This document shows, piece after piece, positions 3,607 through 49,700 of a stretch of 64,000 nucleotides of DNA. The stretch is from assembly GCA_964035545.1 (NCBI GenBank), contig OZ037773.1, positions 7,159,751 through 7,223,750 of the forward strand, written 5' to 3'. Positions within the stretch are counted from its first letter, which is position 1, and each line of letters begins with the position of its first letter. Source of the DNA: Bugula neritina (lineage: Eukaryota; Animalia; Bryozoa). A model generated the notes under the pieces. The model did not search any database. It worked only from the letters and a program-made list of their open reading frames with translations, and was not told the origin of the DNA. The position numbers and the translations under genes were made by a program.

Positions 3607-6263
3607 ATGGTTGAAAGAAGTGACAAGCAGCCGAACACAGCTGACATTGTGATGAGCAGCATTTCCAACATGTGAGTGTCTGTTGATGATTATTATTAAA
3701 GTACAGAAAGCAAATCAACTATTCTATAGCTTTTTAATTTTACATTAGATGACACTTACTATAATATAAACAAATTTTTGCATATATTGTAACTTAAAGC
3801 CTAATACAACTCAAAAAAATGTTGCTAATTGCAAACTTTACACTTTTCTGCTCACTAAAAGTATTAAAAATTAAATTTCAGGTTAGAAAGACGAGCTAGC
3901 ACATTTGAAAGCCATTTCATAGACTTTGAGTTCAACAGAGTCCTACAGCCTCAACCCAAACTTGCATTCATGAAGGCAGTTTTCAAAGAGATGACTAAGA
4001 ATGACTTGGAAAGTTTCAAGAACTTTGCTAATGCTATTGAAATGTTGGGTGAGTGAAAATAAGCTTGGAAAATCTGTTAGGCAAGATAAATTATCGCATC
4101 ACCAATGGTACCATACATACAAGGTACCATACATACAAGGTGTCATACATACATGGCGTCATACATACATTGTGTCATACATACATTGTGTCATACATAC
4201 ATTGTGTCATACATACATGGTGTCATAAATACAAGGTCTCACACATCCATTATGTCATATATACATGGTGTCATACATACATGGTGTCATACATACATTG
4301 CGTTATACATTGTGTCATTCTTTGTGTCACCTACTATAGCAACCAGGGAAAGAGGCTTGTGGTCCTACATGTTGAGTTGCAGTACAGAAACTTACAGAAT
4401 GAACAATATGGGCTTTCATCACTTTTTAGCCAGAAATCCTATCACAATACAGTTAAAGGAAACTATAACCTGGGAAAATATTGCTGCTGTAAGTATTACA
4501 CAGCACGTCTACCTTATACTTCAACTTGTTTCACAGAAATGCTTGAGTTTATACAAGTATGTATGTGTCAAGTTCAATACTTGAAGGTTGACAGCTTTGA
4601 GTCTCAATAAAGCATTGTTTGAAAACAGATTTATATTTTTGTGTAAATTGGTACTTGGTCAAAGATAAAAACATTCCCCCCCCCCCCCCCCGGCCATTTC
4701 AGCAGGCATGCCAAATTTTTTGTTTTGTAACTCTTATAATGCTTTTAGTACTAAAGTTTATGTAGTGTTGATTGTGCATTTTTGAATACTACTTGTACAT
4801 TACAGTTTATCAAATTTATAATATCCGATATGATAATATTTGCAAATTCAAATTAGTCATGAATTTGATAAATTCTGTCTTTCATTTATACTAGGTAATA
4901 GTTACAGCTCTGCTTATGACACTTGTTCCTGTATGCCATGTAATAACTGCATGGCACTATACAAGCATGCACTTGGTCCTACATGTCATGTAATAACTGC
5001 ATGACACTAGACAAGTACTTGTTCCTGTATGTCATGTAATAACTGTATTGCATTCAGTCAATAAACCTGCGTAGCTGTGAATAGGTGTGCTAGGCTGTTG
5101 ATTGCATTTGGAACTATTTAGAACATGTTTGGATCTTGATTTGCATGGATACTTTTGCAGTTGCTTGCGCTGATGGGAAGAGCTGCATGTGAATGTCTGT
5201 ACATAGTAGGAAATTCAACCCGAGTAGAAGGGATGATACAATGGTGTGTAGGTTTCTTTGATATTCCATTAAAACAAGGTGTCAGTATCAACGAGTGGAT
5301 CGATTCAGCTGGGGGTTGGGTAAGTTGATAGCCTGCAGGGGAGAAAACCGGAAAGTATGTCAAAAATACTACAGTTATGTTATTATGAAATGATGTTTAG
5401 CTTCTTTTGCCAAGGAGGTAGTTGATCAGCTCCAACAGTGTCAGCAAAGTAACAATAAAATGTGTTGATTCCTTATTGGTTACTCATTCTTCTACTAAAA
5501 TGTATTACAATATATGTTGGTGCAATTTATAAACCAATGTTTTGCTCATTTTTGACTTAAGTTTTATTTGTGTTGTCATACACAAAGCATTGTGGTGCCT
5601 TGGGGTTTTGCATTATTAGAACTTAATATTAAGTTTCATGAGCTACAGAGTCCATAGATTTGATATGTGAAGAAATCTAATATGAAACTAATTTCTCTTG
5701 CCCTTGCCATGTGATCATGTTTTAGGTTTAAAAAAATAAAAGAGAAATAAACTGACTGTTTTGTCACACTTGGTAATAATTTTCTTTGTATTCTCTAGAG
5801 TAAAATATTTCATGAGATGCACAACCTGCAGAGCCAGGCATTTAGGAACAAGACAGATGGTTACGGAAGCACCAGCTCAGAGAGCCACCAGGAACCATCA
5901 CATGGTGACTCATTCCCTCCAGAGTGCATGAAGAGAGACAGTCCTAGAGGCTTTCTGCAGTCTCCATGTGACCGGACCACCATGGTAGCCAGGCTACATG
6001 GCTCTCCTCTCCAGATGTTGGATAAAGCAAGTCAAGATGTGAACAGCTCTAAGAGAAGAGGATTCTATCAGATTCCTCAACCTACAGCTGGAGCAAATGG
6101 CGTTCAGCTGGAAGGAAACTATTCTTTATTTCAGGGTCTCATTTCAGTGGCACAGACAGATCTCTCTGTAAAGCCTGAACCTCCCTTTCAAATATTTCAT
6201 TCAACTTCACAGTCCTATATTTCAGGATTTTACACAGTTCCCCAGTTCCCCTATAGACTTTAG
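3607..6263 (+). CDS. Divergent Bcl-2-family protein, paralog A (about 334 aa); exons 3607-3671, 3882-4048, 4340-4488, 5161-5319, 5799-6263
   Basis: Open spliced frame: MVERSDKQPNTADIVMSSISNMLERR (BH4-like) ... ETITWENIAA|LLALMGRAACECL (BH1-like) ... SINEWIDSAGGW| (BH2) with a phase-0 intron right after GGW. Exon lengths 167/149/159 are identical in paralog B. AATAAA at 6470. Confidence 0.85.
4105..4320 (+). repeat. 16-bp intronic minisatellite (TGTCATACATACATTG-like) in intron 2 of paralog A
   Basis: Visible tandem array; absent from the equivalent intron of paralog B. Confidence 0.85.
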
Positions 6264-8217: not shown

Positions 8218-10295
8218 ATGAGTGAAGAAAAGCCAGATACAGCCGACATTATAATATGCAGCGTCCTGAACACGTAAGTGGCCTACTGATAGATCAATGA
8301 CAATTTATAGAAAGTAAACCATTACAGCTTCATTTCTACTATGTGTCATTTGATGCAGCTCATTTTTCAACTAAAACCTTAAACCACCCTGATTATTGAT
8401 GAAAATCTAAAAAGACAGGTTTGGCCTACAGCATTATTAGTTAGTCAATGTTCTGTTGCTAAACTTAACATGTTGGAAATTAAATTTTAGATTGGAAAGA
8501 CAGAAGATGGTGTTTGAAAACCATTTTATAGACCTACAGTTCAACAGATCCTTGCAGCCCCAACCAAAGCTTGCATTCATGAGGGTGGTTCTCCAAGCGA
8601 TGACCAAGAATGACTTGACGAATTTCAGAAACTTTGCTAATACAATAGAAATGTTGGGTAAGAAAGGTAGATTGATCACATTTGTTTAGATAGATATTTA
8701 TTGCTCCTTCTGCACACGGTACCATTCTAATAACAAGTTCCTAAAATCATTAACGGCAAAAGAGAAACTTGAGATGCTTCATATAATATGTCAATATATA
8801 ACAATGACCCATCTTAATCTAAAGCTAGATAAATAAGTTTTTTTGCTATTTTTCTATAGCAATTTGTTATCATTTTAAAATATAAATTGTGATGTCGTTT
8901 TGTACAACTGCCACTGTATTTTGAATGTCTCACTTGAGTTAGATTCGTGTGGTATGTCATAATAGTCAGGCATTGAATTATTGTATAGTAACACCTAGTA
9001 TAAACAGCCGTTTCTATAGCAACCAGAGAAGGAAGCACATGGTCTGACCTCTTGAGTTGCAGAATAGAGGCTTTCCAAATGACTCATGAGATGTTTCAGG
9101 ACTTCCTGACAAAAAATCCTATCACAGAACAACTGACTGAAAATGTGACTTGGGAAAATATTGCTGGAGTAAGTACCGTGCAGTGAGTCTAGTACATAAG
9201 CTAGCAGCTAACAAAGTTGTCGTTAACCTAATTTTACCAAAGTTTGAACCAAACTTCAACATTTATGGTTTCAAGCTGTGTACCAAGTGACAAAGGTTTT
9301 TTCATCAACCAGTCTGTATTGCAATGAACTATGATATATAAATATGTGTAAACTATGTATATGTAAACTTCAATATTCTTAGTTTGAGACACAAGTAAAT
9401 GTTGTGATATCTTATGATGATACAAACTCTAAGTGGTGAATTATTCACTTTTACTGTGCCATTTTCCAACCCCTATAACTGGTGACACTTGTTCCTGCAT
9501 GTCATGTAATTAATGTATGGCACTAAAGAAGCACGTGCTCTTGAACTCCATGTAATAAATGTTTTATTTGGTTACACTTTCGGTCAATAAACTGGTGTGT
9601 TTTAAGCTGTTATGTACTTCTTAGATTTTTCAAAACCTGTACGTATCTTGATTTGCATGGATACTTTTGCAGTTGCTTGCACTGGTGGGGAGAGCTGCCT
9701 GTGAATGTCTGTACATAGTAGGAAACTCAACCCGAGTAGAAGGGATGATACAATGGTGTGTAGGTTTCTTTGATATTCCATTAAAACAAGGTGTCAGTAT
9801 CAACGAGTGGATCAATTCAGCTGGAGGTTGGGTGAGTTGATAGCCTGCAGGGGAGGCAATCGCAAAGTATGTCAGAAATATTACAGTTATGCTATTATGA
9901 AATAATGCTTAAATCTAATTTTATTTTAAGCTAAAAGCTGTGCAACCATTTAATAAGAAATCAATCCTTTTTTGCTTGTTATGCATATTTATGTAGATAT
10001 CACCTAATGTTTTACATGATGTGTAATATAATGCAGTTATTATAGGCCTATTGCTGTTAATATAGTAAAGTTATTGTATCGTTGTTATTATAATACAGTT
10101 ATTATATTATATCTATTGTATAGTGGTCAATATATTAGTGTGAAAAATGTAAATCTATGTTAAATACTAACAGTTCATGTTATCTTATATTAGTTCTGTT
10201 TTCTCCAGAAGCAAATATTCCATGAGATGCAAAGAGTACAAAGCCAGACTTTAAAGGGAAGAAAAAATAGTTCGATACCAGAAGTAAATAAGTAG
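8218..10295 (+). CDS. Divergent Bcl-2-family protein, paralog B (about 205 aa); exons 8218-8273, 8491-8657, 9020-9168, 9673-9831, 10209-10295
   Basis: MSEEKPDTADIIICSVLNTLERQ ... ENVTWENIAG|LLALVGRAACECL ... SINEWINSAGGW|KQIFHEMQ..EVNK*; same intron positions and phases as paralog A; AATAAA at 10845. Confidence 0.85.
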
Positions 10296-11271
10296 CCAGC
10301 TTTATACCGAGCGGGGCCAACACTTTCAGAGTTTAAAGGAAAGAGCAGCCCTAAAAGTCCTTTATAATCTCCATGTGACCAGACCACCATGGTAGCCAGG
10401 CCACATGGCTCTCTTCTCCAGATGTTGGATAAAGCAAGTCAAGATGTAAACAGCCTTAAGAGAAGAAAGTTCCATCAGATTCCTCAACCTCCAGCTGGAG
10501 CAAATGGCGTTCAACTATTCTCTCTTTCAGAGTCTCATTTCAGTGGCACAGGCAGATCTCTCTGTAAAACCTGAACCTCCCTTTCAAATATTTCACTCAT
10601 AGTCCTATACTTCAGGATTTCTTCTCTCGCTGCATTTTCCTAAAAGTCTTCAGATTAATTGACAATTGAGTTGGTTTCTAATAATTTCTTCGCAAAGTAT
10701 TAGTTAAAAGTTTAAAGTTTTATGTATTGCTATGCTATGCTATATGTCAGCTTCATTTACAACTTTTGAGTCTGGTTAAAGGTTGACATTTCTGGTGCAA
10801 GTTTCTTATGCAATTCTTGATTAAAAGTTTAGTGCAGAATTTTCAATAAATCTAGTCTTGATTTCAAAAACTTGGTTACATCTGTTTTAGGAATAGTCAA
10901 CATTCTTAGACTATATAATGTACCAAACAAACCTTCTGAAATTTTACATACGGCAATAACTTATTTCTAAAATTATGATGGGAAATAATTACTCTAAGAA
11001 AAATTGTGACAAGATTTCAACTTTAGTAAAAGTGCAATTCATACACATTGAACTAGCACTGCATACATAACATAGCATACCTACACCTTGTATATTTAGG
11101 GTTGTGTCCTTTTTATTAACTTTTTTGTATTTATAAAACTAGACTTAAAGCTGTGATCTACCCCTAGTGTACTTGTCATACAATGCTAGCAGATTCTTCC
11201 TTCGAGGAATAATTTACATCTGATTCTAAATATTCTAACTCCAAGACAATTGGTTAATCGTTAGAACACAT

Positions 11272-20300: not shown

Positions 20301-23300
20301 TTCAAATTGATCTCCCAAGCCAAGATTATATGCCTGGAACTGTAGGTTAGTATACTGTCCACCTAAACATTCCAACCATTTATAATGTGCCAACCATAAT
20401 CAACAACACAAATTGTTGTGTTAAATTGAAAAACTGCATTGCAAATGATGAGAATATAATAGAGCTAGAGGGTAGCCATTTTCTTCTCACATGACGTATT
20501 ATTGGCTAGTCACACGGTCCACAAAATGTGATTGGCCCATGACTAACTCTACCTACTACTCAGTATATAACTGAAATAAATGTACACTAGTATGCAATGT
20601 CTTACTTCAAAGATCTTCTATTTAGTATTATAACCTCTAGCATAAAATGCAAACTCTCTACGGACTAATTTATCCAACAGCAAGCCTACCAGGTATTTCA
20701 TTGATATACACGTCTGAATTGCCACTGCCCATTGTGGTGGTCGTCTCAAAGGGTGCATACAGGTGTCTTGCTTGTCTCCAGTAGGCGGTGTATGTCGATA
20801 TGTCCTTCAACTTCAGACCTAAAGTTATGACAGAGGATTATAAATAGCCATAGAGATGAGAGAAGGGTAACTAATGAAAGTTCACTTTACACACACCTGT
20901 CTCAAGGTCAACACACACCTGTCTCAAGGTCAACACACACCTGTCTCAAGGTCAACACGCACCTGTCTCAAGGTCAACACACACCTGTCTCAAGGTCAAC
21001 ACGCACCTGTCTCAAGGTCAACACACACCTGTCTCAAGGTCAACACATACCTGTCTCAAGGTCAACACACACCTGTCTCAAGGTCAACACGCACCTGTCT
21101 CAAGGTCGGTGTTCTGCACGGAGGCCACTAAGGCACCCATACTGGGCTGAGAAGTAAGCCCCGACATAGAATCGACAGCACAGTCTACAATGTTAGCTCC
21201 GGCCTGAGCCGCAGCCAACATGGCCGCCACGCCAGCTCCAGCAGTATCGTGAGTGTGCACGTGTACAGGAGTGTCAGGGAACTTTGTCTTCAGGGCATCA
21301 ACCAGGATTCTGGCAGCTTCAGGTTTCAGCACACCAGCCATGTCCTGCAGCAGACGTATTTGTGATTCATCAGAATACAAGATACATTTTCATAAGCGCT
21401 TATTTCATGTCATTACACTTTGAGACCCGGATGAGTACTAAGATTTGTGGCTATTTTCTAATCAAGCTACCAACTAAAGTGAAAGTTAGTTGATGAATGC
21501 ATGGATCTATAGCTAAGAGAAGATCAGTTATTGGATGTACACATACATACTCTGTTTCTTTACAATACATCCACAAACTGATATCACAGCCCTAATTTTT
21601 ACTAACAATCAGTACTACTAATAGTAGAGAGAGCTAACAACTGAGTACCTTAATTCCAATAATGTGAGCCCCGGCCCGGACCAGTTCTGAAGCTAAGTCT
21701 ACATAGTACTTCAGGGTGTACTTAGTCTTTGTGGGATCAGCGATATCACCTGTGTACGCGATGGTGGCTTCAACAACTCCCCCTGTGAGTGTAGTGAAGT
21801 AGAAACATGCGTGTTATACTTGGTTACCAGCGTACAGTCTGTATAGTAAATACAGAGTACGTATTAAATACAGTGTAAGTATAGTACATACAGTGTAAGT
21901 ATCGAATACAGTGCAAGTATTAAATGCAGGTAAGTATAGTACATACAGTTTGTACAGTACATACAGTGTAAGTATAGTACATACAGTGTACGTATTACAT
22001 ACAGAGTAAATAGAATATACAGTGTAAGTACAATAAATACAGTGTAAGTATAGTACATACAGTGTAAGTATAGTACATACAGAGTAAATAGAATATACAG
22101 TGTAAGTACAATAAATACAGTGTAAGTATAGTACATACAGTGTAAGTATAGTACATACAGAGTATGTATTAAATACAGTGTAAGTATAGAATATACAGTG
22201 TAAGTATAGTAAATACAGTGTAAGTATAGTACATACAGTGTACGTATTACATACAGAGTAAATAGAATATACAGTGTAAGTATAGTAAATACAGTGTAAG
22301 TATAGTACATATAGTGTAAGTATAGTAAATACAGTGTACGTATTACATACAGAGTAAATAGAATATACAGTGTAAGTATAGTAAATACAGTGTAAGTATA
22401 GTAAATACAGTGTAAGTACAGTACATACAGTGTAAGTATAGTAAATACAGTGTAAGTATAGTACATATAGTGTAAGTATTATATACAGTATATGCAGTAC
22501 ATACAATGTAAGTATAGTACATACAGTGTAAGTATAGTACATACAGTGTAAGTAACAACTCACCAGCCTGACCAACAGCCTCTACTCCTAGTAACATGTT
22601 AGGCATATAGTTGAGACTGTCAAATACTCTGAACACATCCATGCCATTTTCCACGGCTAAATCACAGAACCTGCAAATATACAAGTCAGCAAATGACCTA
22701 AAAGATTGTGTCAGCAAAATTAAGTGTCAGTAGAGTGACCTATTAAATAGCGTGAGTCATTAAAGGTCACCTGAAACTTTTTATTCTTAAAATATTTGGG
22801 TTTTACTGATTATCATCAACATAGTGTTTTGTACAGCTTAAGATTTTACAGGGCAACATTTGACTTTAAATGATGCATTTAGATGACATACTAGTTTTCT
22901 CGTAACATAAAATTGACATTTTTGATGCACATATATTGGTGTGAAGCTGTAATCGTATGTTTTCCAAGAAGTACTCGTATAAAGAATTGAGGTTTAAACA
23001 TGTTATCTATATAAGTATTATTCCACATGATATGAGGTGAGTAGAGAGAATATGCAGAGAGAATATGCAGAGAGAATATGCAGAGAGAATATGCAGAGAG
23101 AATATGCAGAGAGAATATGCAGAGAGAATATGCAGAGAGAATATGCAGAGAGAATATGCAGACAGATGAACCTGTGTATAACATTGTCAGGATAGGCAGC
23201 GTATCCGACAGCGTTGGCACCTCTCAGCAGCATCTGAAATGGTATGTTGGGAATCTGCTCTCTCAGAGTTCGTAACCTTTCCCAAGGACATTCGTACAGA

Positions 23301-26300: not shown

Positions 26301-29300
26301 TTGAAATGAACATGGATTCCATAACCTTATACTACTAGTACAGCGTGCTGCTGCTTCAAATGCTGTCAGCAGAAAGGCCCTTATAGTTTCTATAACCAGT
26401 ACATGAAATAGGAATCCTGTAATAGCTGATGAACATAAGCTATAATAGTGGGAGATGCAGTAACTGGGAGGATAACTCTCAGCACATGTGAAAGATTATA
26501 AACAGCATTCACTAATACTCCACTCTCTAGTTACAGTTTAATGTAAAACTTATTGATTATGTGGAGAGGTTGAGACTTTATTTACTGACAGCTTACAGCA
26601 CTTCCTGTTTGGTCTCCGGCCACAAGTATTGTATTCCAATAACGATCGTTTGGGATTATAATTTACACTATAGTGTTGTGATTATATATATACAGCAACA
26701 TCTGCTACCCTCTCTTACCATGGAATGCAGGAATCAAGTTTTAATAAACATATTTCACCTAACAAGTCTCAATCGCCTTGGCATTAGTACAATTCGTAAC
26801 TCGTGTAGTATTTAAAGGAAAGAATATACCTTACCCAGTGACCTCTTCACTGACTGTGTGTTCAACTTGCAGTCTAGCATTGACCTCTATGAACCATGGC
26901 CTGTTCTCCTGATCCACTAGAAACTCCACTGTACCAGCATTCTACAATAAGTTTATAGCAGACGTTAAACAGCAGACGAAAAAGAAGACAATTCTACCAA
27001 CAGCATACGTACTGTAGAACCTTGGATAGAGGTCACCAACAGATAAACTGTGAAGCGTTTATTATACTAGTGATGCAGAGTGAGAAAACCACAGCTAGGC
27101 CATAAAGATTTACATATCAATAGCAAGATGCAAGCTACTGCTGGTATGTTAGGAACATTAAGGTCAAGGTAGCAGTCTGCAGTATAAAGGTCACGTTTCT
27201 CAACATAAACAAGTAATTGGCTCAGGAAATCTATACCCTGGAACCTTCCAGCACTTTAGAGAAGCTTCAAAAGTTGAATAGAAAGAGATGAATACAAAAC
27301 ATGCAGGCTGATCGCAACACAAAAAGATCAGAAGATAATTTTTCAATTACAAGAATGAGTCAAGTTGAATAGCTGAAGACTGCATGTAGTTTACAACATG
27401 GCTGACTAGTCAGTCTCTACTTCACAGACGGGTCTACTTTAGAGAGAGGGAACAACTCTCAACGGCTGAGAACTACAACAGCTAATAAAGTGTACACGAG
27501 GAGGCTAGTCCTCGGCCAGCGTTAGTTGTGATGCACATAAAGATAGAAGTTTTGCTATTAGGTATGTATGCTCAGTTATCATAATCAATCTGATAATGCA
27601 TTTCAAATCAGCCAATCAACTTTCACGAGGCTTTAACTCAGGTGAATGGGAGTTTACCTGGTATCCTACAAACTTTGTCAGTTTGACAGCGTCATCAATA
27701 ATCTTCTGTCTGACAGCGGGGTCGAGAAATGCTGCCGGGGCAATCTCCACTACCTTCTGGTACCTTCTCTGAACAGAGCAGTCTCTTTCATACAGATGGA
27801 CAATGTCGCCAGTGGCATCACCTGTCACAGTTCAACAGAGATTAAACTGGTGAATATGTATGTACAGTCTGTGTGTAAGAGAAGATAACCCCTAGTAAAA
27901 CTGCGGGTTCTATACAACTACACAGTGTGTCACTATATTCTTCAACCAGTAATAGCATCAACACATCTTCAGTAAGTATAGTGTAAAGGTATATACACCT
28001 ATACCAGTGCTGAGCTAAAGAGCATACCAAATAGTATTGTTGCAAATACAGTTGTTATCACTGCAGTGGTAATAACTAATATGATCATAGAGATAGTTGC
28101 TAGAGCATGGAGTCAAAGGATTGCCATTATTTTACACGCCATAAGATTATTCCTTGCATATAGTTGACTATGTAATAGTTTTTAGGATAAATAAAAATGG
28201 AATAGTTACCATTAGCTATGATTGTTGATTTGTGCAATGACAGCAACTCAATCTATTTCATGTATAAACGTACCGAGAATTTGCACTTCTATATGCCGAG
28301 GTTTGACGAGGTACTTCTCAATAAAGAGAGCTCCGTTACCGAAGGAAGACAATGCCTCGGATGTGGCTCTTTCAAACTGCTCTCGTAAATCCTAGGCAGT
28401 AAATATAGAGATCTTATAATATGTACTATACAGTATACACGGTATATACGTAGTGTATATGTACTATACAGTATATACTATACAGTACACACGGTATATA
28501 TGTAGTGTGTATGTACTATACAGTATATATATATAAAATACAATTAACTGAAAACCAACATTTACTATAGAAAACATGAAAGTAATAATAAAGTTAATTT
28601 TTCCTGAACAAGAATTTGTGTAGAAATATTGAATTGTGATTCATTATTGATTTCATAAATACTGATTATTGCTATACTCAATATCTGGAGTGTGTAATAG
28701 GATGAAGTACTGGTAATCCAGTTGTATTTATAGTACAACTGGTATGTTGATTTCACGGAAAACAACATTGCCAGAAATATTTCATAAAAATTGTAGGAAA
28801 GCAAAAAATGTTGCCATAAACAGATAGCATGTAGCAGGATGCCTAAAGGTGGTGTACTAGGATACAGAGATGTGACACAGATCCTGGTGTGAAGTAGGGA
28901 TGTCTGGTATTGAGTTCACACCAGGACACCACACAAACTTCTACTCAATGCTCCATTTACTCACACATTACTAACTTTCACTTCACGCGGATACACTCTT
29001 TATATAAAGCTTTAGTTTAGTAGGTTGAATATTGGAGCTACTAATGCTACAGTCCAGTTGTTTGTAACATGCCATTAGATGCAGCCATTACTAGACAAAT
29101 AATCAATGCTTCACCTACCACTACACAGCATAAAGTAGAGGAAAATAGAAGAATTAAGATCTACTAATCACCAATTATTATCAATTACCATTATATTTAT
29201 ACATAGGACATTAGTTTGCCCTTTATGACTACAATATATAATCTGTTTTATACTGTTTCTCTAACAACAGCTGCCGCTAATACTAAAACTATTACTACTG

Positions 29301-32300
29301 CTGCCTAAGAACATTACTACTGCTGCCGATACTGTGACCATTGCTGCCGTTACCTCCTTATTATTCACAATTCTCATCCCTCTGCCTCCTCCCCCATACG
29401 CTGCTTTCAGTATAGCAGGATATCCGTACGTCTCACAAAACTGTAACGCCTCTTCCCATTGGGTGATGGGTCCGTCACTTCCCGGGACCACATCAACACC
29501 TAAAGCAGAAAATAGAGTTGTTATACAGTATAACAGAGCGGTAATAGGGTAGAATAGAGGGGTAATACAATATAATGAGGTGGTAAAAAGGTAAAACATA
29601 GTGGAAAACTTGCAATATTTGTCAAACCTGACAAAGCCTGCAGCTAACATGTATTTCTTGACTATTTTCTTAAATAAACTGAGAGCTAGGTTCATCACAA
29701 AGAATATTTTTACCAGTCAACTCAATGTAAATTGCACCAGACAGAAATACAGACACATCAGCATATTATACAGTGAACATGCACTTTACTATTAACCTTC
29801 AGTTGAAGGATATAATTTACTATCCAGGGGTAACCACAGGCATGCCTGAGACAGACAGAGTTGGAGTAATACAGCATATAATACTCTGTATACCTTTCCT
29901 ATAGGTGCTAGAGTTGGTATTACTAAGTAACACAGCATATATCACTCTGTATATCACATCAATAGGTGCTAGAGTTGGTATTACTAAGTAACACAGCATA
30001 TATTACTTTGTATATCACTTCTACAGGTGCTAGAGTTAGTATTACTCAGTTACACAGCATATAATACTCTGTATATCTATTCTATAGGTGCTAGAGTTAG
30101 TATTACTAAGTAACACAGCATATAATGTTCTGTGTATATTTTTTCTATAGGTGCTAGAGTTGCATTGAGTGTTGCACTGTATCTATTAGTAGTAACACTT
30201 ACTGAATACATCCCCTGCACCATGCAATGTACAGACATTAGTGTCACATGAAGCTTATTGTTGTTGTTATTGTGTCTCTATTCAAAACATCTACTTATAA
30301 CTTCAAGTAAATGGAGTATTATCTATTCCTAGTGTTTTGAGGAGATCTATATACATAGTACTCAAATTATATACATAGTACTTAGTAGGGCAGCTGTTCC
30401 ACAGGCTTATTTTCTCACACAGCCCTGTTCGGACACAGTCATTGGTCAACAAAATAACTCTAAACATAGTGAAGTTGCACACCCTTACTAACAGCAGAGG
30501 CTGCCAAATCAACTGAAGAATTAGATGAAATAACATAAAATGTTATATTCCAAGTAACTTTAGACTACTGTAACCATTGCAGAGTTAAGGTAGACTAATT
30601 TAACAGTAGTTAGGATGTCAGTCACCAGCTTAAATGCAGTCAACGTTCATTGACACTAAGTACTGTGTTGAACCTTCACCTGCACGCACTGGCATCGTGT
30701 GTAGTAGCCTACTGACACGTGACCGAGTTGCGACTATGTCTGGTAATTATTTACATTAAGATAAGGCATGCAGGTAGAAGCCACAGACGACCGACCGTAG
30801 GGGTGCAGACGACTGTTGTGGTGCAGACGACAGAGGCAGATGGTATTAGTATAAACACTGTCAACAGTGTATGCCTGGATATTGAGGGGAAAGCATGAAA
30901 TGACTGCACTATGTTCAGATATCTACCAGTGCATGATTTAATATAAGAATTAGAGACTGGTAACACAAGTTTGAAGATAGGAGAGATTTATGGGACTAGA
31001 GGTGTGACTATAACAACTCAGTGATTAATAAACGTCTAATAGAAGAAGGTAAAAATCACTGTGACTGACAGTGAGTCACTGTGACTGGGAGTGAGTCACT
31101 GTGACTGGTAGTGAGTCACTGTGACTAACAGTGAGTCACTGTGACTGGCAGTGATGACTGACAGTGACCAGTGAGTCACAGTGATTAGACTATAACTCAT
31201 TTTATAGCAAGCTAATTCAGCTAGTTCCTAAGTCAGAGCACAAATAACTAACATGTTAGATGAATGAACAAGCATGAACAACACCAACAAACACACTCAC
31301 GTACCGGCAGCAATAGCAGCTTCTCGGGCTAAAACCTTGTCTCCCATCCGCCGGACGGTCTCAGGTTTTGGGCCAATGAATTTTATGCCAGCATCGATGA
31401 CGGCTTGCGAAAACTCAGCATTCTCTGAGAGAAATCCATAGCCAGGGTGGATGGCATCAACATCGTACTCCTAACACGCAGATAACAATGTAGTTCTTAG
31501 GCTAAACTCCGCAACAATCCCAACATAGTTGTAAAATTGTAGATAAAAATCACTAATAGCCGAGAGAAATATGCTAAAGTTAGTTTTGTTTTGGTTAGCA
31601 AAATCTATTGCTGCAAATTGTCATTGTAACCCCCTCCCTCCTTCCCTCCCTCCCGCACACAAATGTGATGGCAATACGACAGCCATGATGGATTATGATG
31701 GAACCTGCATGATTTACTGTATACTGATGTAAGCTGTTAGCAGTATAATAGTGACATAATAAGTATTACATATCTCAGCTTATGCATGTGTGAGATAGTC
31801 TCTTAAAGTGGTCTACTCTACAGGTAAGGTCTGTATTTTGTGAATACAGAGATATGTGCAGACATGTCTGGAATATCACCAACTCCTGACCCATCAAATA
31901 GAGAGAGTTATCTCACTAGTGTTTAAGTATGTAGTGTTTTAATGAATAGAAAATACAACCATAGAACTACGTTAACACTACACATTTATAGTGTGTCAGC
32001 GTACCTTAGCTACATTAACAATTTCAGGAATATTCAGATATGCTGCAACTGGGGCCAATCCTTTTCCTATCAAATAAGATTCATCGGCCTTTAGCCTGTG
32101 AGTTGACTGTTTGTCTTCGTTAGAATAAACAGCAACAGTCCTTATCCCCATCTCCGTGGCACCTCGAAACACACGGATGGCAATTTCACCTGCAGTTGAG
32201 AGAGAGAGAGACTTATCATAAAGGGCGTCCATAAACATTTATATTGCATTGGCAATAAAACATGTGATATATCGCAGAGTCAATCAAAGTGAATAACATT

Positions 32301-46797: not shown

Positions 46798-49700
46798 TCA
46801 TTGGCTGTTAATATCATATTTTAAGAGTCCTTCGTAAGCGCCAGCAACCCACAGCTGGTTTTCTATCACACACATGCTGGTTACCTCATTTAGAATACTT
46901 CCATCCGGCAGTTTAAGGTAGCTCAGTATTTTCTCTTTCAGCTCACCTGTCAAATAATAATATAATGTGTCAGATATATCATTATATTAAACTTTCCTAC
47001 AGTCAGCATATAACCCAGTTAAAGAATGATTGTTCAGAAATCGTAGCACACCAAAACTTTTTACACCAAACAGCCTCAGAGTAAATTCAAAGCCTCATTA
47101 ATCTGTTATTTTGCTTTTTGATTATAAACTTCAAGTGCTGTTAAATACCATACAAGCACAAAATAAAAGTTTAAAAGATTCATCTCCCCATTACCACATG
47201 AAGCTTGAAGTGGAATATTTATCGGAATCATCTCTTATGTCAACTTATCTAAAGAACAGCTTATAAAGGTGCACAATCATGACTAAATAAAATAAGCTGG
47301 TCTCCCTCTAAAAGTGTATACTCTTGCCTGTTTCTGAGTCAAATATGAAGATGCCTTCACTCGAATAGGACTTCACCCACAATTCTTTGTTTGCTTCATG
47401 AAAGCAGACGGCCATTGGTTTTGTGACATGACAGCTCCAGACCAGTTTGTTTTCTTTGCAGTCAATTTTGCTGACCGTGTTTGAAGACTGGCTAGTTACT
47501 ACTATGCTGTCAGGGGGACATAAGCACATAAACTTTGGCTTCTTGAGTACTTGGTGCTTTATCGTCGTCTGTGGAACTCCATAGATTGAATAGACACTGA
47601 GACTATGAAGATCTGGGTTCGTAACATACACATTCTTGTTGCTAACAGCCAGGTGACCCACTGACTTGCTGTCCGAGACCGACCAGCGTGTCATTTCCTG
47701 GTACTCGGAACCGTACACAATCACTTCCCTTTTACCGGGTCCAAATCTGAACAACGCATAAACTCGGTTTGTGTATTTCTGTGCAGAGAGACAAGCACTA
47801 GCAGTTTTGGGTGCTTGTTCCTGTATGTGATCACTGCCGCACAGCGCCCCTTGTCTGTATTTGAGGACGCAGAAGTGTGCCAGTCGGCTTATGAATATTT
47901 CCCGGTCATTCTCAAAAACATCTAAACACAGGCCTTTCAGTACGACGGAGCCATCGCCAAAGCTGTAGCTTGGTCGAGAACTGTCTGTAAAAGTTATAGA
48001 AATTAGATAGTTATCACTACAATAAAGTTCAATAGCTTAAATTCTATAGGAATATTATTCTGTTTTAAGGCCCAGTTTTTGAGAAAGTCAGACTAGGTAT
48101 GTCTGTTTTCAGAAGCACATAATTTCACAACTTTTTGTGAGAACCACACTATAAGCACTTGATGCTGTTTCATAAAGCTATTCATGGAACATTTTACCTT
48201 TATGGGTTTACCAGCCTCACTACTTTGACTTACTTTAAGCAGTCTCAGAAGCTGTTCTCATGGATAACTTTGAACTGCTTACCAATTGAATAAAACTCTG
48301 GTTGCAACCTGTATTAGTACTGTATGCTTTGGGCTCTAACCTACTAACTTACTTTTACTAATTGAATTTTGGAATATTTACCAGCTGGTGTAGAGTTTAG
48401 ACTGTCAGCCTCATCTTCAGATATTTCCTGGCTATCATCTGGCGGATTTAAATGACAACTCCTAAAAGGCAAAACCTCGTCTTCTTTTCCTGACTGCTCT
48501 GTTGGTATATTTCTATGAATAATTGATTGGTGCTTTAGTGACGTGTCTTTTTCTACATTGTTAGCTGAACTGAATTTAAGATCATTCTTCATATTTGGAA
48601 CAGGTAACTGCGTGCTATCTTGGAAAAAGTCAGCTGTTACATTTTCGTATGTTGGTCCTTTATTCTTTGCTGAACTTTTATTTAAGAAGATTGGATTAAA
48701 CGGTATTATTTCTGATGTTATGTATGTGTCCTCATCCTCATTTGAACAGTCATCTCCTCTTGAACTACTATCCTCTTTAGAATTTCGATCGTCTTTTGAA
48801 CTACTATCTTCTTTTGAACTACCATCTTCTTTTGAACTACCATCTTCTTTTGAACTACCATCTTCTTTTGAACTACCATCTTCTTTTGAACTATTGTTCT
48901 CTTCTGAATTAACATCGTCTTTTGGAATACCATCTTCTTTTTCATAGAGAGTACCATCTAAAAGCATAAAATACACCCAGGTCATAATTTAACTTGAATA
49001 TTTCTGCCATAGAAACATTCTTCTGGCTCTCAACTTTAGTTTCAGACTTGAATTTTTGGTTCCATATTTATAAAGTTCAAATTGGTTGCTTTATTTCACA
49101 GATCAGCAAAATTTATAAATATGTTTACAGTTTTACAATCTCAGACACATTGACAGCCATTAATGTTTAGCAACAGCATAGTAAGTATGCATGCATCTAC
49201 TTATCGGATAATCTAGCTGCTTATACAGTCTATAAAGATCAGGCACTAATTAACTGAAATAGTTAGAAGTTGAAAGCAGTCAAACATCAATGGAGTTTAG
49301 GTAAAGATGGCACAGGTAATAATGACAGAAATTGAAAAATAGTAAGTAAAAATGCCATTTTGACTTACTTTTCTATTTGTCCCAATTTTACCTGTGCCAT
49401 TTTACCAGACGCCATATAAATTAGTCAAAAAATCTTCCCCATGCGGTTCATTTTAAGAATCAGACATTTACCTGAAGAAAGTTGACTTATGAGTTTAATA
49501 AAATCTCTATCATCAAGGCTTTTAATGCCACTCTGGTACCGATCTAAAACATCCCGGTTTTCTTCAATCTTTTTAGTAATATCTGCAATATCTTGAGATT
49601 TTACACCTGCTTCTTGAATAGCTTCTCGAATGTTCGCAACAGTTGCTTCTGATATTTCCTTTTTTATACCGGTCAACAATTGGTTTCGCTGTAAAATTCA

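Follow-up and report, generated by a model that had tools for sequence, protein, structure and literature searches.

In canonical Bcl-2 family proteins, the Gly of the BH1 motif packs against a partner's BH3 helix, for which it leaves room, and the Arg that follows it pairs with the BH3 Asp. What becomes of this contact when a natural protein carries neither residue? We address this question for two tandem genes, A and B, of the bryozoan Bugula neritina, where the residues TWEN appear at the place of the canonical BH1 residues NWGR. The genes are located in a window of 64,000 nt (assembly GCA_964035545.1, contig OZ037773.1, positions 7,159,751-7,223,750 of the forward strand; C9:7159751-7223750 in the 216-Mb genome). 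By the window we mean the whole stretch of DNA that was analysed, and positions are given relative to its first letter. Overall, we consider it fairly probable that A and B encode divergent, anchor-less Bcl-2-fold proteins of a lineage-specific Bax-like expansion, in which TWEN is the equivalent of NWGR and the canonical BH3-in-groove contact is most likely impossible.

The gene models are based on an all-frame comparison of regions A and B, on DNA alignment and on reading of the junctions. We found two parallel genes of five exons each on the + strand, with frames that are open in both copies, junctions that are all AG/GT and phases that agree (2, 1, 0, 0). The predicted proteins comprise about 334 aa (A) and 205 aa (B). 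Exon 1 of gene A (3607..3671) starts with ATG (MVERSDKQPNTADIVMSSISN…), ends in phase 2 and is followed by GTGAGT; it has 48% amino acid identity to exon 1 of gene B (8218..8273; MSEEKPDTADIIICSVLN…). Exon 2 of gene A (3882..4048; 55 full codons, LERRASTFESHFIDFEFNRVLQPQPKLAFMKAVFKEMTKNDLESFKNFANAIEML) lies between an AG acceptor and a GTGAGT donor, with phases that fit exons 1 and 3, and it aligns to exon 2 of gene B (8491..8657) with 67% identity. Exon 3 (4340..4488 in A, 9020..9168 in B) comprises 49 codons and terminates in the BH1 equivalent, which translates as ITWENIAA in A (4465..4488) and as VTWENIAG in B (9145-9168), with a GTAAGT donor directly 3' of each. Exons 2 and 3 are present in just two copies, those of A and B, across the 216-Mb genome. 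Exon 4 of gene A (5161..5319; 53 aa, LLALMGRAACECLYIVGNSTRVEGMIQWCVGFFDIPLKQGVSINEWIDSAGGW, then GTAAGT) encodes the remaining helix 5, helix 6 and BH2 (INEWIDSAGGW). Exon 4 of gene B (9673..9831, then GTGAGT) spans the BH1 tail to BH2 (…INEWINSAGGW) and is 96% identical to that of A. The last exons are tentative, as they were recognised only through mutual conservation between A and B. Exon 5 of gene A (5799..6263; SKIFHEMHNLQSQAFRNK…) encodes a long non-hydrophobic tail, and gene B shares the acceptor and first 17 codons of this exon; exon 5 of gene B (10209..10295) reads KQIFHEMQRVQSQTLKGRKNSSIPEVNK followed by a stop codon, with no membrane anchor. A hydrophobic C-terminal anchor, which most but not all Bcl-2 proteins have, was found neither in these best 3' exons, which encode polar tails, nor as a conserved hydrophobic exon downstream of A or B, where the 3' ends are putative. 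Intron 2 of gene A also contains a 16-bp minisatellite of 12 copies (4112-4310).

Do these genes belong to the Bcl-2 family? A six-frame search of the genome with PF00452 resulted in 29 matches, many of them in tandem, which represent a large Bcl-2/Bax-like expansion; none of these matches is in the window. The only Pfam matches among eight exons of A and B are faint ones to DEATH_SH3BP4 (E 0.12) and TnpV (E 0.11). The assignment is carried by exon 4. We built a blind hidden Markov model (HMM) from the exons that span the BH1 tail to GGW in 12 PF00452-positive paralogs outside the window and compared it to 1979 open reading frames (ORFs) of the window. The model ranks exon 4 of gene B first (E 7e-5) and exon 4 of gene A second (E 8.4e-5), and the next ORF follows at 0.21. 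In the alignment, exon 4 of both genes matches the family at its conserved columns (W, FF and WI…GGW), with 20-34% identity to most paralogs. Furthermore, the BH2 pattern W-x3-GGW is present in both, at a phase-0 intron after the Trp, which is a conserved boundary in the Bcl-2 family (PMC8998228). When exon 4 and the paralogs are combined into one profile (A3), the best match is human BAX (E 2.6e-9, residues 113-158), followed by Bcl-2 (2e-6) and then Bcl-xL. This ranking might point to the Bax/Bak subgroup, but paralogs make up most of the profile, and a tree of the short segment is poorly resolved. No BH3 motif (L-x3-G/A-D) was seen in exons 1-3 of A or B by inspection. Overall, the evidence supports that A and B are Bcl-2-family genes.

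The initial annotation had aligned WEN with WGR at the start of helix 5, and this register is upheld by exon architecture, by the register of exon 4 and by an unlinked paralog, rather than by any likeness of exon 3 on its own. A phase-0 intron lies exactly five residues past the BH1 Trp in at least 12 paralogs, as it does after ITWENIAA, and the exon that comes next has 47-53 aa and ends with GGW, which is the layout of A and B as well. Examples of sequences that end at this intron are INWGKLVL, LTWGRLAI, VEWGRIFK, ITWGKILI and YNWGRLSM among the paralogs with the Gly and MTWERLLV, ISWQRIIM, MSWDRVVT, ISWDRVVM, LSWTRIVM and ITWTKIMM among those without the Gly. The downstream exons of the paralogs begin at PF00452 positions 54-56, that is directly after W-G-R-I-V-G, according to an ungapped count on the intron-less paralog L001. 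Position 2 of profile A3 aligns with F114 of BAX, which puts the first residue of exon 4 on L113 and W-E-N on W107-G108-R109. Based on the exon junction and the profile-to-BAX alignment, T-W-E-N-I-A-A of gene A corresponds to N106-W107-G108-R109-V110-V111-A112 of human BAX. In the unlinked paralog L015 (on C2), ITWENIV lies within one exon together with BH2, and MAFFT aligns it to (V/I)xWGRIV of canonical proteins; the canonical string VNWGRIVA is seen in Bcl-2 proteins of the database.

Structure models, which cover the exon 4 fragment of the window and the L015 exon, are consistent with this register. In the AlphaFold2 (AF2) model of L015 (pLDDT 85.5), a 20-residue helix begins at the Trp of TWEN. 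Ranked by TM-score, this model superposes best on chains of Bcl-xL (TMq 0.75, rmsd 2.3 Å), with Foldseek E-values above 1 for this short helical piece. The AF2 fragment of exon 4 (pLDDT 74) has helices at residues 2-16, 19-38 and 43-49, and a helix from residue 2 is what is expected if helix 5 begins in WENIAA. As far as these fragments tell, WEN is located at the start of helix 5 and not outside it; the input alignments included canonical relatives, which makes the model evidence partly circular. With exon 3, hhalign detects only the eight residues TITWENIA/GIQWGRIV (P 0.011, probability 4%), which is not significant. The combined pattern of a hydrophobic residue before Thr-Trp, a hydrophobic residue at +3 and an intron at Trp+5 has a chance of about 1e-4, as estimated from residue frequencies. 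We conclude that TWEN as the positional equivalent of BH1 NWGR is well supported. The Trp is at the homologous place, and both genes depart from the canonical N-W-G-R, with Gly changed to Glu and Arg to Asn.

Is this motif maintained by selection? TWEN had been reported for both paralogs, with TWENIA invariant in an exon of about 54% identity, and the change had been read as a selected one. The translations confirm the motif in both genes. Over the 49 codons of exon 3, we measured 53% protein identity and 69% DNA identity, and the six residues T-W-E-N-I-A are identical between A and B. By our estimate, about 4 in 10 pairs of exons with 49 columns and 53% identity would contain an identical run of six residues, and the chance that two given positions remain identical is about 0.3. 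As such runs are common at this level of identity, the invariance of TWENIA alone does not imply selection on the motif. The ratio of nonsynonymous to synonymous divergence (dN/dS) between A and B is 0.20 for exon 2, 0.27 for exon 3 and about 0.23 for both together, at a synonymous divergence (dS) of about 1. The high dS and the low dN/dS show that the duplication is old and that both copies have been constrained since. Thus, the claim of selection holds for the genes, which are under purifying selection overall, but the data do not demonstrate it for the motif as such, as a comparison of two paralogs has no statistical power. A DNA run of another individual supplied contigs that are 2-3% different from the assembly; in exons 1-3 of gene A, these contigs contain four synonymous (3885, 3903, 3912 and 4359) and two replacement polymorphisms (3636, N>K; 4462, T>A), and there is none inside 4465-4488.

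We also searched the whole genome with a back-translated TWENI pattern. This resulted in eight matches compared to eight in the reversed control, and the credible ones are the three known genes only. An isolated ORF of 41 aa on the minus strand (L034, G000:C9:3378694-3378709; …LCWDILTWENIALALMSLQCG…) resembles TWEN and the start of helix 5, and no BH2 exon was found within 1.5 kb of it. It may be the relic of a further copy or a chance match.

Exon 4 differs in its divergence from the exons upstream. The block 4970-5399, which consists of exon 4 of gene A and its intron flanks, is 83% identical to 9486-9911 of gene B, with 96% identity within the exon and a dS of 0.16. A second block conserved between A and B (5955-6235 versus 10362-10620) forms part of the coding sequence in the model of gene A and lies 3' of the stop codon in gene B. 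Both blocks are 83-87% identical, the remainder is saturated, and both are found in only these two copies in the genome. Since exon 4 and its flanks are homogenised and occur in two copies only, we read the exon 4 block as the signature of local gene conversion between A and B; considered together, the two blocks point to local gene conversion or to a conserved 3' element. One DNA contig of a public run joins 5343 to 5961 and skips 617 bases, with 30 letters on its shorter side. Either a structural variant or a shortcut in the assembly graph from one conserved block to the other could account for this join.

How unusual are Glu and Asn within this genome? The loci of the expansion include L005 and L007 on C3, L006, L017, L018, L020, L021, L025 and L026 on C8, L019 on C5, L014 on C4 and L015 on C2, and we counted BH1 residues in the 19 family members with a readable BH1. 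The Gly is kept in 8 and replaced in 11 of the 19, by Glu in four (A, B, L015 and L018), by Asp in two, by Thr in two and by Gln, Ser or Ile in one each. The residue after the Gly position is Arg or Lys in 14/19; it is Asn in A, B and L015, Ser in L006 and Thr in L026. The combined loss of the Gly and the basic residue is found in five of the 19. Hence, losing the basic residue is less common than losing the Gly, and the Gly position varies freely across the family. This variation looks more like relaxed or diversifying evolution of the Gly site than like a specific solution that was kept, as had been proposed for A and B.

A BH1 without the Gly is what A and B have in common with L015 (ITWENIV), L018 (MTWERLLV and ISWQRIIM), L019 (SWDR twice), L017 and L021 (WTR and WTK), L006 (WSS) and L026 (WIT). 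The Gly-less paralogs share with A and B the phase-0 intron at Trp+5 and the 47-53-aa GGW exon, and most of them retain Arg or Lys. In L015, which has TWEN in common with A and B, the intron is missing; the gene is on a different chromosome and falls outside the pair in a poorly resolved tree of the segment from helix 5 to BH2. In this tree, A and B have NWGK and TWGR genes of C3 as their closest rows, and L015 stands apart. TWEN of L015 and of A and B may go back to a common origin or may have arisen by convergence. A word-index protein search with the L015 exon returned only its own genomic ORF. Upstream motifs that resemble BH3 (VGD, VGK or LGQ) tend to accompany a canonical BH1 and were not seen in the paralogs with an acidic BH1 or in A and B, judged by inspection of a small sample. 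For one canonical Bcl-2 ORF of the genome, an identical copy is present in SRR4020082-84 and in the JGI sample 3300003318.

Which effect would the two replacements have on the protein? The Trp is predicted to open helix 5, and Glu replaces the Gly (G108 in BAX, G145 in Bcl-2) and Asn the Arg (R109 in BAX, R146 in Bcl-2). Bax binding is lost in the Bcl-2 mutants W144A, G145A, G145E and R146A, as tabulated in PMC6825947 from PMID 8183370, which confirms the loss of binding in G145A and G145E on which the initial annotation had built. In BAX, G108V and R109D block homodimerisation and function (PMC9004659), and G108E/S184V has been cited as oligomerisation-defective (PMC4891688). By analogy to these mutants, A and B with Glu and Asn at BH1 would most likely be unable to form the canonical BH3-in-groove contact. 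As neither a BH3 motif nor an anchor is recognisable, a role as pore-forming executioners or as classical BH3 sinks is also unlikely. A and B would instead be soluble, re-specialised members of the family with a changed ligand preference. The Glu/Asn change probably predates the duplication (dS about 1) and was retained in both copies, and Gly-to-Glu is one instance of the freedom at the Gly position that is found across the family.

Several observations weigh against this reading of A and B. PF00452 has no match to the individual exons of A and B even at an E-value of 10, and exon 4 on its own had no match in a sequence search of the PDB. The BAX match of profile A3 is owed mainly to its ten paralog rows. 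A blind HMM of the paralog exons from BH3 to BH1 did not pick out exon 3 among the ORFs of the window. By word and profile searches, exons 1-3 are orphans: a word-index protein search with exon 3, which is inside an ORF of 159 aa (proteins of 87-278 aa were eligible), gave no candidate, and a HMMER profile of exon 2 from A and B had zero matches at E <= 0.001 in 1.84 billion representatives. An ESM Atlas feature search with exon 3 resulted in no usable match, and a literature search on bryozoan Bcl-2 expansions returned nothing relevant. The sole public sequencing run that carries the locus is a DNA contig set and not an RNA run, and it is possible that an anchor exon was overlooked in the gene models. 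In addition, the published mutants are less uniform than a complete loss of binding would require. In one assay with a BAK BH3 peptide, BAX G108V and R109D remained able to bind and release it (PMC9004659), so that a loss of all BH3 binding is not to be assumed; G108E/S184V retained substantial permeabilising activity (PMC4891688); and mouse Boo, which naturally has Ser at the Gly position, still binds BH3 ligands with altered rather than lost selectivity (PMC8998228). The results for G108V, R109D and Boo speak for a groove that works in a roughly canonical way, in which the hydrophobic pockets and BH2 carry the binding and Glu and Asn tune the specificity, and the non-Gly residues that are tolerated in 11/19 paralogs fit this explanation as well. 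We nevertheless consider it unlikely, because the double loss of the Gly and the basic residue is rare (5/19), because A and B have no recognisable BH3 motif or anchor and because G145E and R146A each abolish Bax binding in Bcl-2.

In a further reading, an option already raised in the initial annotation, the acidic BH1 residue of A and B could recognise a positively charged or other non-BH3 ligand within a private network of the family. Acidic residues do recur at the Gly site (Glu in A, B, L015 and L018, Asp twice in L019), and A and B have been under purifying selection since an old duplication. Against a charge-specific role across the family, other members carry Thr, Gln, Ser or Ile at this site, and there is neither a candidate ligand nor confidently alignable co-variation; we regard this explanation as improbable. 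A charge swap between the BH1 Glu and a BH3-like Lys was considered and dropped, as no register of exon 2 on the BH3 motif could be supported. A wider and equally improbable scenario would be a lineage-specific radiation of some 20 or more soluble Bax-like receptors whose BH1 position in the groove diversified towards private ligands, for example pathogen or symbiont factors, and whose WEN members dropped the Arg-Asp clamp and read a possibly basic motif. It is very improbable that A and B are unexpressed or decaying and that the motif changed by neutral drift. Such a decay would agree with the lack of an RNA run with the locus, of database relatives and of the A and B proteins themselves in databases, and with the long odd 3' frame of gene A, which enters a block that is untranslated in B. 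Decaying copies, however, are not expected to keep frames open, phases consistent and splice sites canonical in both genes, or to show a dN/dS of about 0.23 at a dS of about 1 and a polymorphism of four synonymous to two replacement changes. Finally, exons 1-3 could come from an unrelated gene that was fused to a Bcl-2 C-terminal exon, such that TWEN is a chance lookalike of BH1. No similarity of exons 1-3 to any Bcl-2 protein is detectable, the faint DEATH-like Pfam match of exon 2 (E 0.12) is present in both copies, and the history of exon 4 differs from that of exons 1-3. Yet the pattern of hydrophobic residues, Thr-Trp and intron position, with its low estimated chance, matches at least 12 paralogs, and conversion between A and B accounts for the distinct history of exon 4, as the flanking introns are homogenised and only two copies exist. 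We thus consider a fusion extremely improbable.

Other features of the window lie upstream and downstream of the two genes. Upstream of A, positions 78-2200 on the + strand contain exons that resemble an arylsulfatase (…VFTTDNGGQ…), as recognised by eye only, and a 25-bp minisatellite with about 22 copies (960-1520) lies in an intron of the gene upstream of A. On the minus strand, ORFs at 22343-22717 and 29261-29698 resemble exons of pyruvate carboxylase or biotin carboxylase (…FRVFDSLNY…), and long, pyrimidine-rich minisatellite ORFs are found at 17.4-22.6 kb around these carboxylase-like ORFs. A minus-strand ORF of 213 aa (48344-48985) is acidic and serine-rich and has tandem SKEDGS repeats.

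What, then, can be learned from the two genes? A natural protein that is maintained by selection and that carries the classic loss-of-binding change from Gly to Glu, and that also lacks the Arg, would be a ready-made test of what a Bcl-2 groove is capable of. The pair is of moderate interest to specialists of apoptosis and not a surprise. A point that may matter more is the Bax-like expansion below Pfam detection, with a common extra intron and a freely varying groove residue. As far as sequences tell, this expansion suggests that regulators of cell death were re-used or diversified in this animal lineage.

Among the known systems, human BAX (N106-W107-G108-R109) is the best profile match of exon 4 with its paralogs, and the Glu of A and B is the substitution of the laboratory mutant G108E. 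In contrast to the BAX mutants, the changes in A and B are natural, combined (Glu and Asn) and fixed in two genes. A and B also differ from BAX in that they have no visible BH3 motif or C-terminal anchor, in that exons 1-3 are unrecognisable and in that the identity is below Pfam detection. The Bcl-2 mutants G145E, G145A and R146A affect the same two BH1 positions, but they were induced in a canonical anti-apoptotic protein, whereas A and B appear to be naturally diverged Bax-like paralogs. The Caenorhabditis elegans allele ced-9(n1950) reportedly carries the same change from Gly to Glu, as G169E. Natural BH1 sequences without the Gly have been described for Bcl-2L4 of Trichoplax (ISWRR) and for mouse Boo/Diva (Ser), and they were read as a lost or changed function of the groove (PMC8998228). 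Bcl-2L4 has an Arg at the Gly site and keeps the Arg that follows, and Boo/Diva has a Ser, whereas A and B have an acidic residue and have lost the Arg as well. Bfk/Bcl2L15, an example of the Bcl-2 relatives that lack BH1 or an anchor, is described in PMC8814693 as a soluble Bcl-2 fold with an incomplete set of BH motifs; A and B would resemble it in these respects, with no apparent relationship in sequence. Natural Bcl-2 family proteins without the Gly are thus already on record, and A and B are a variant within a known family.

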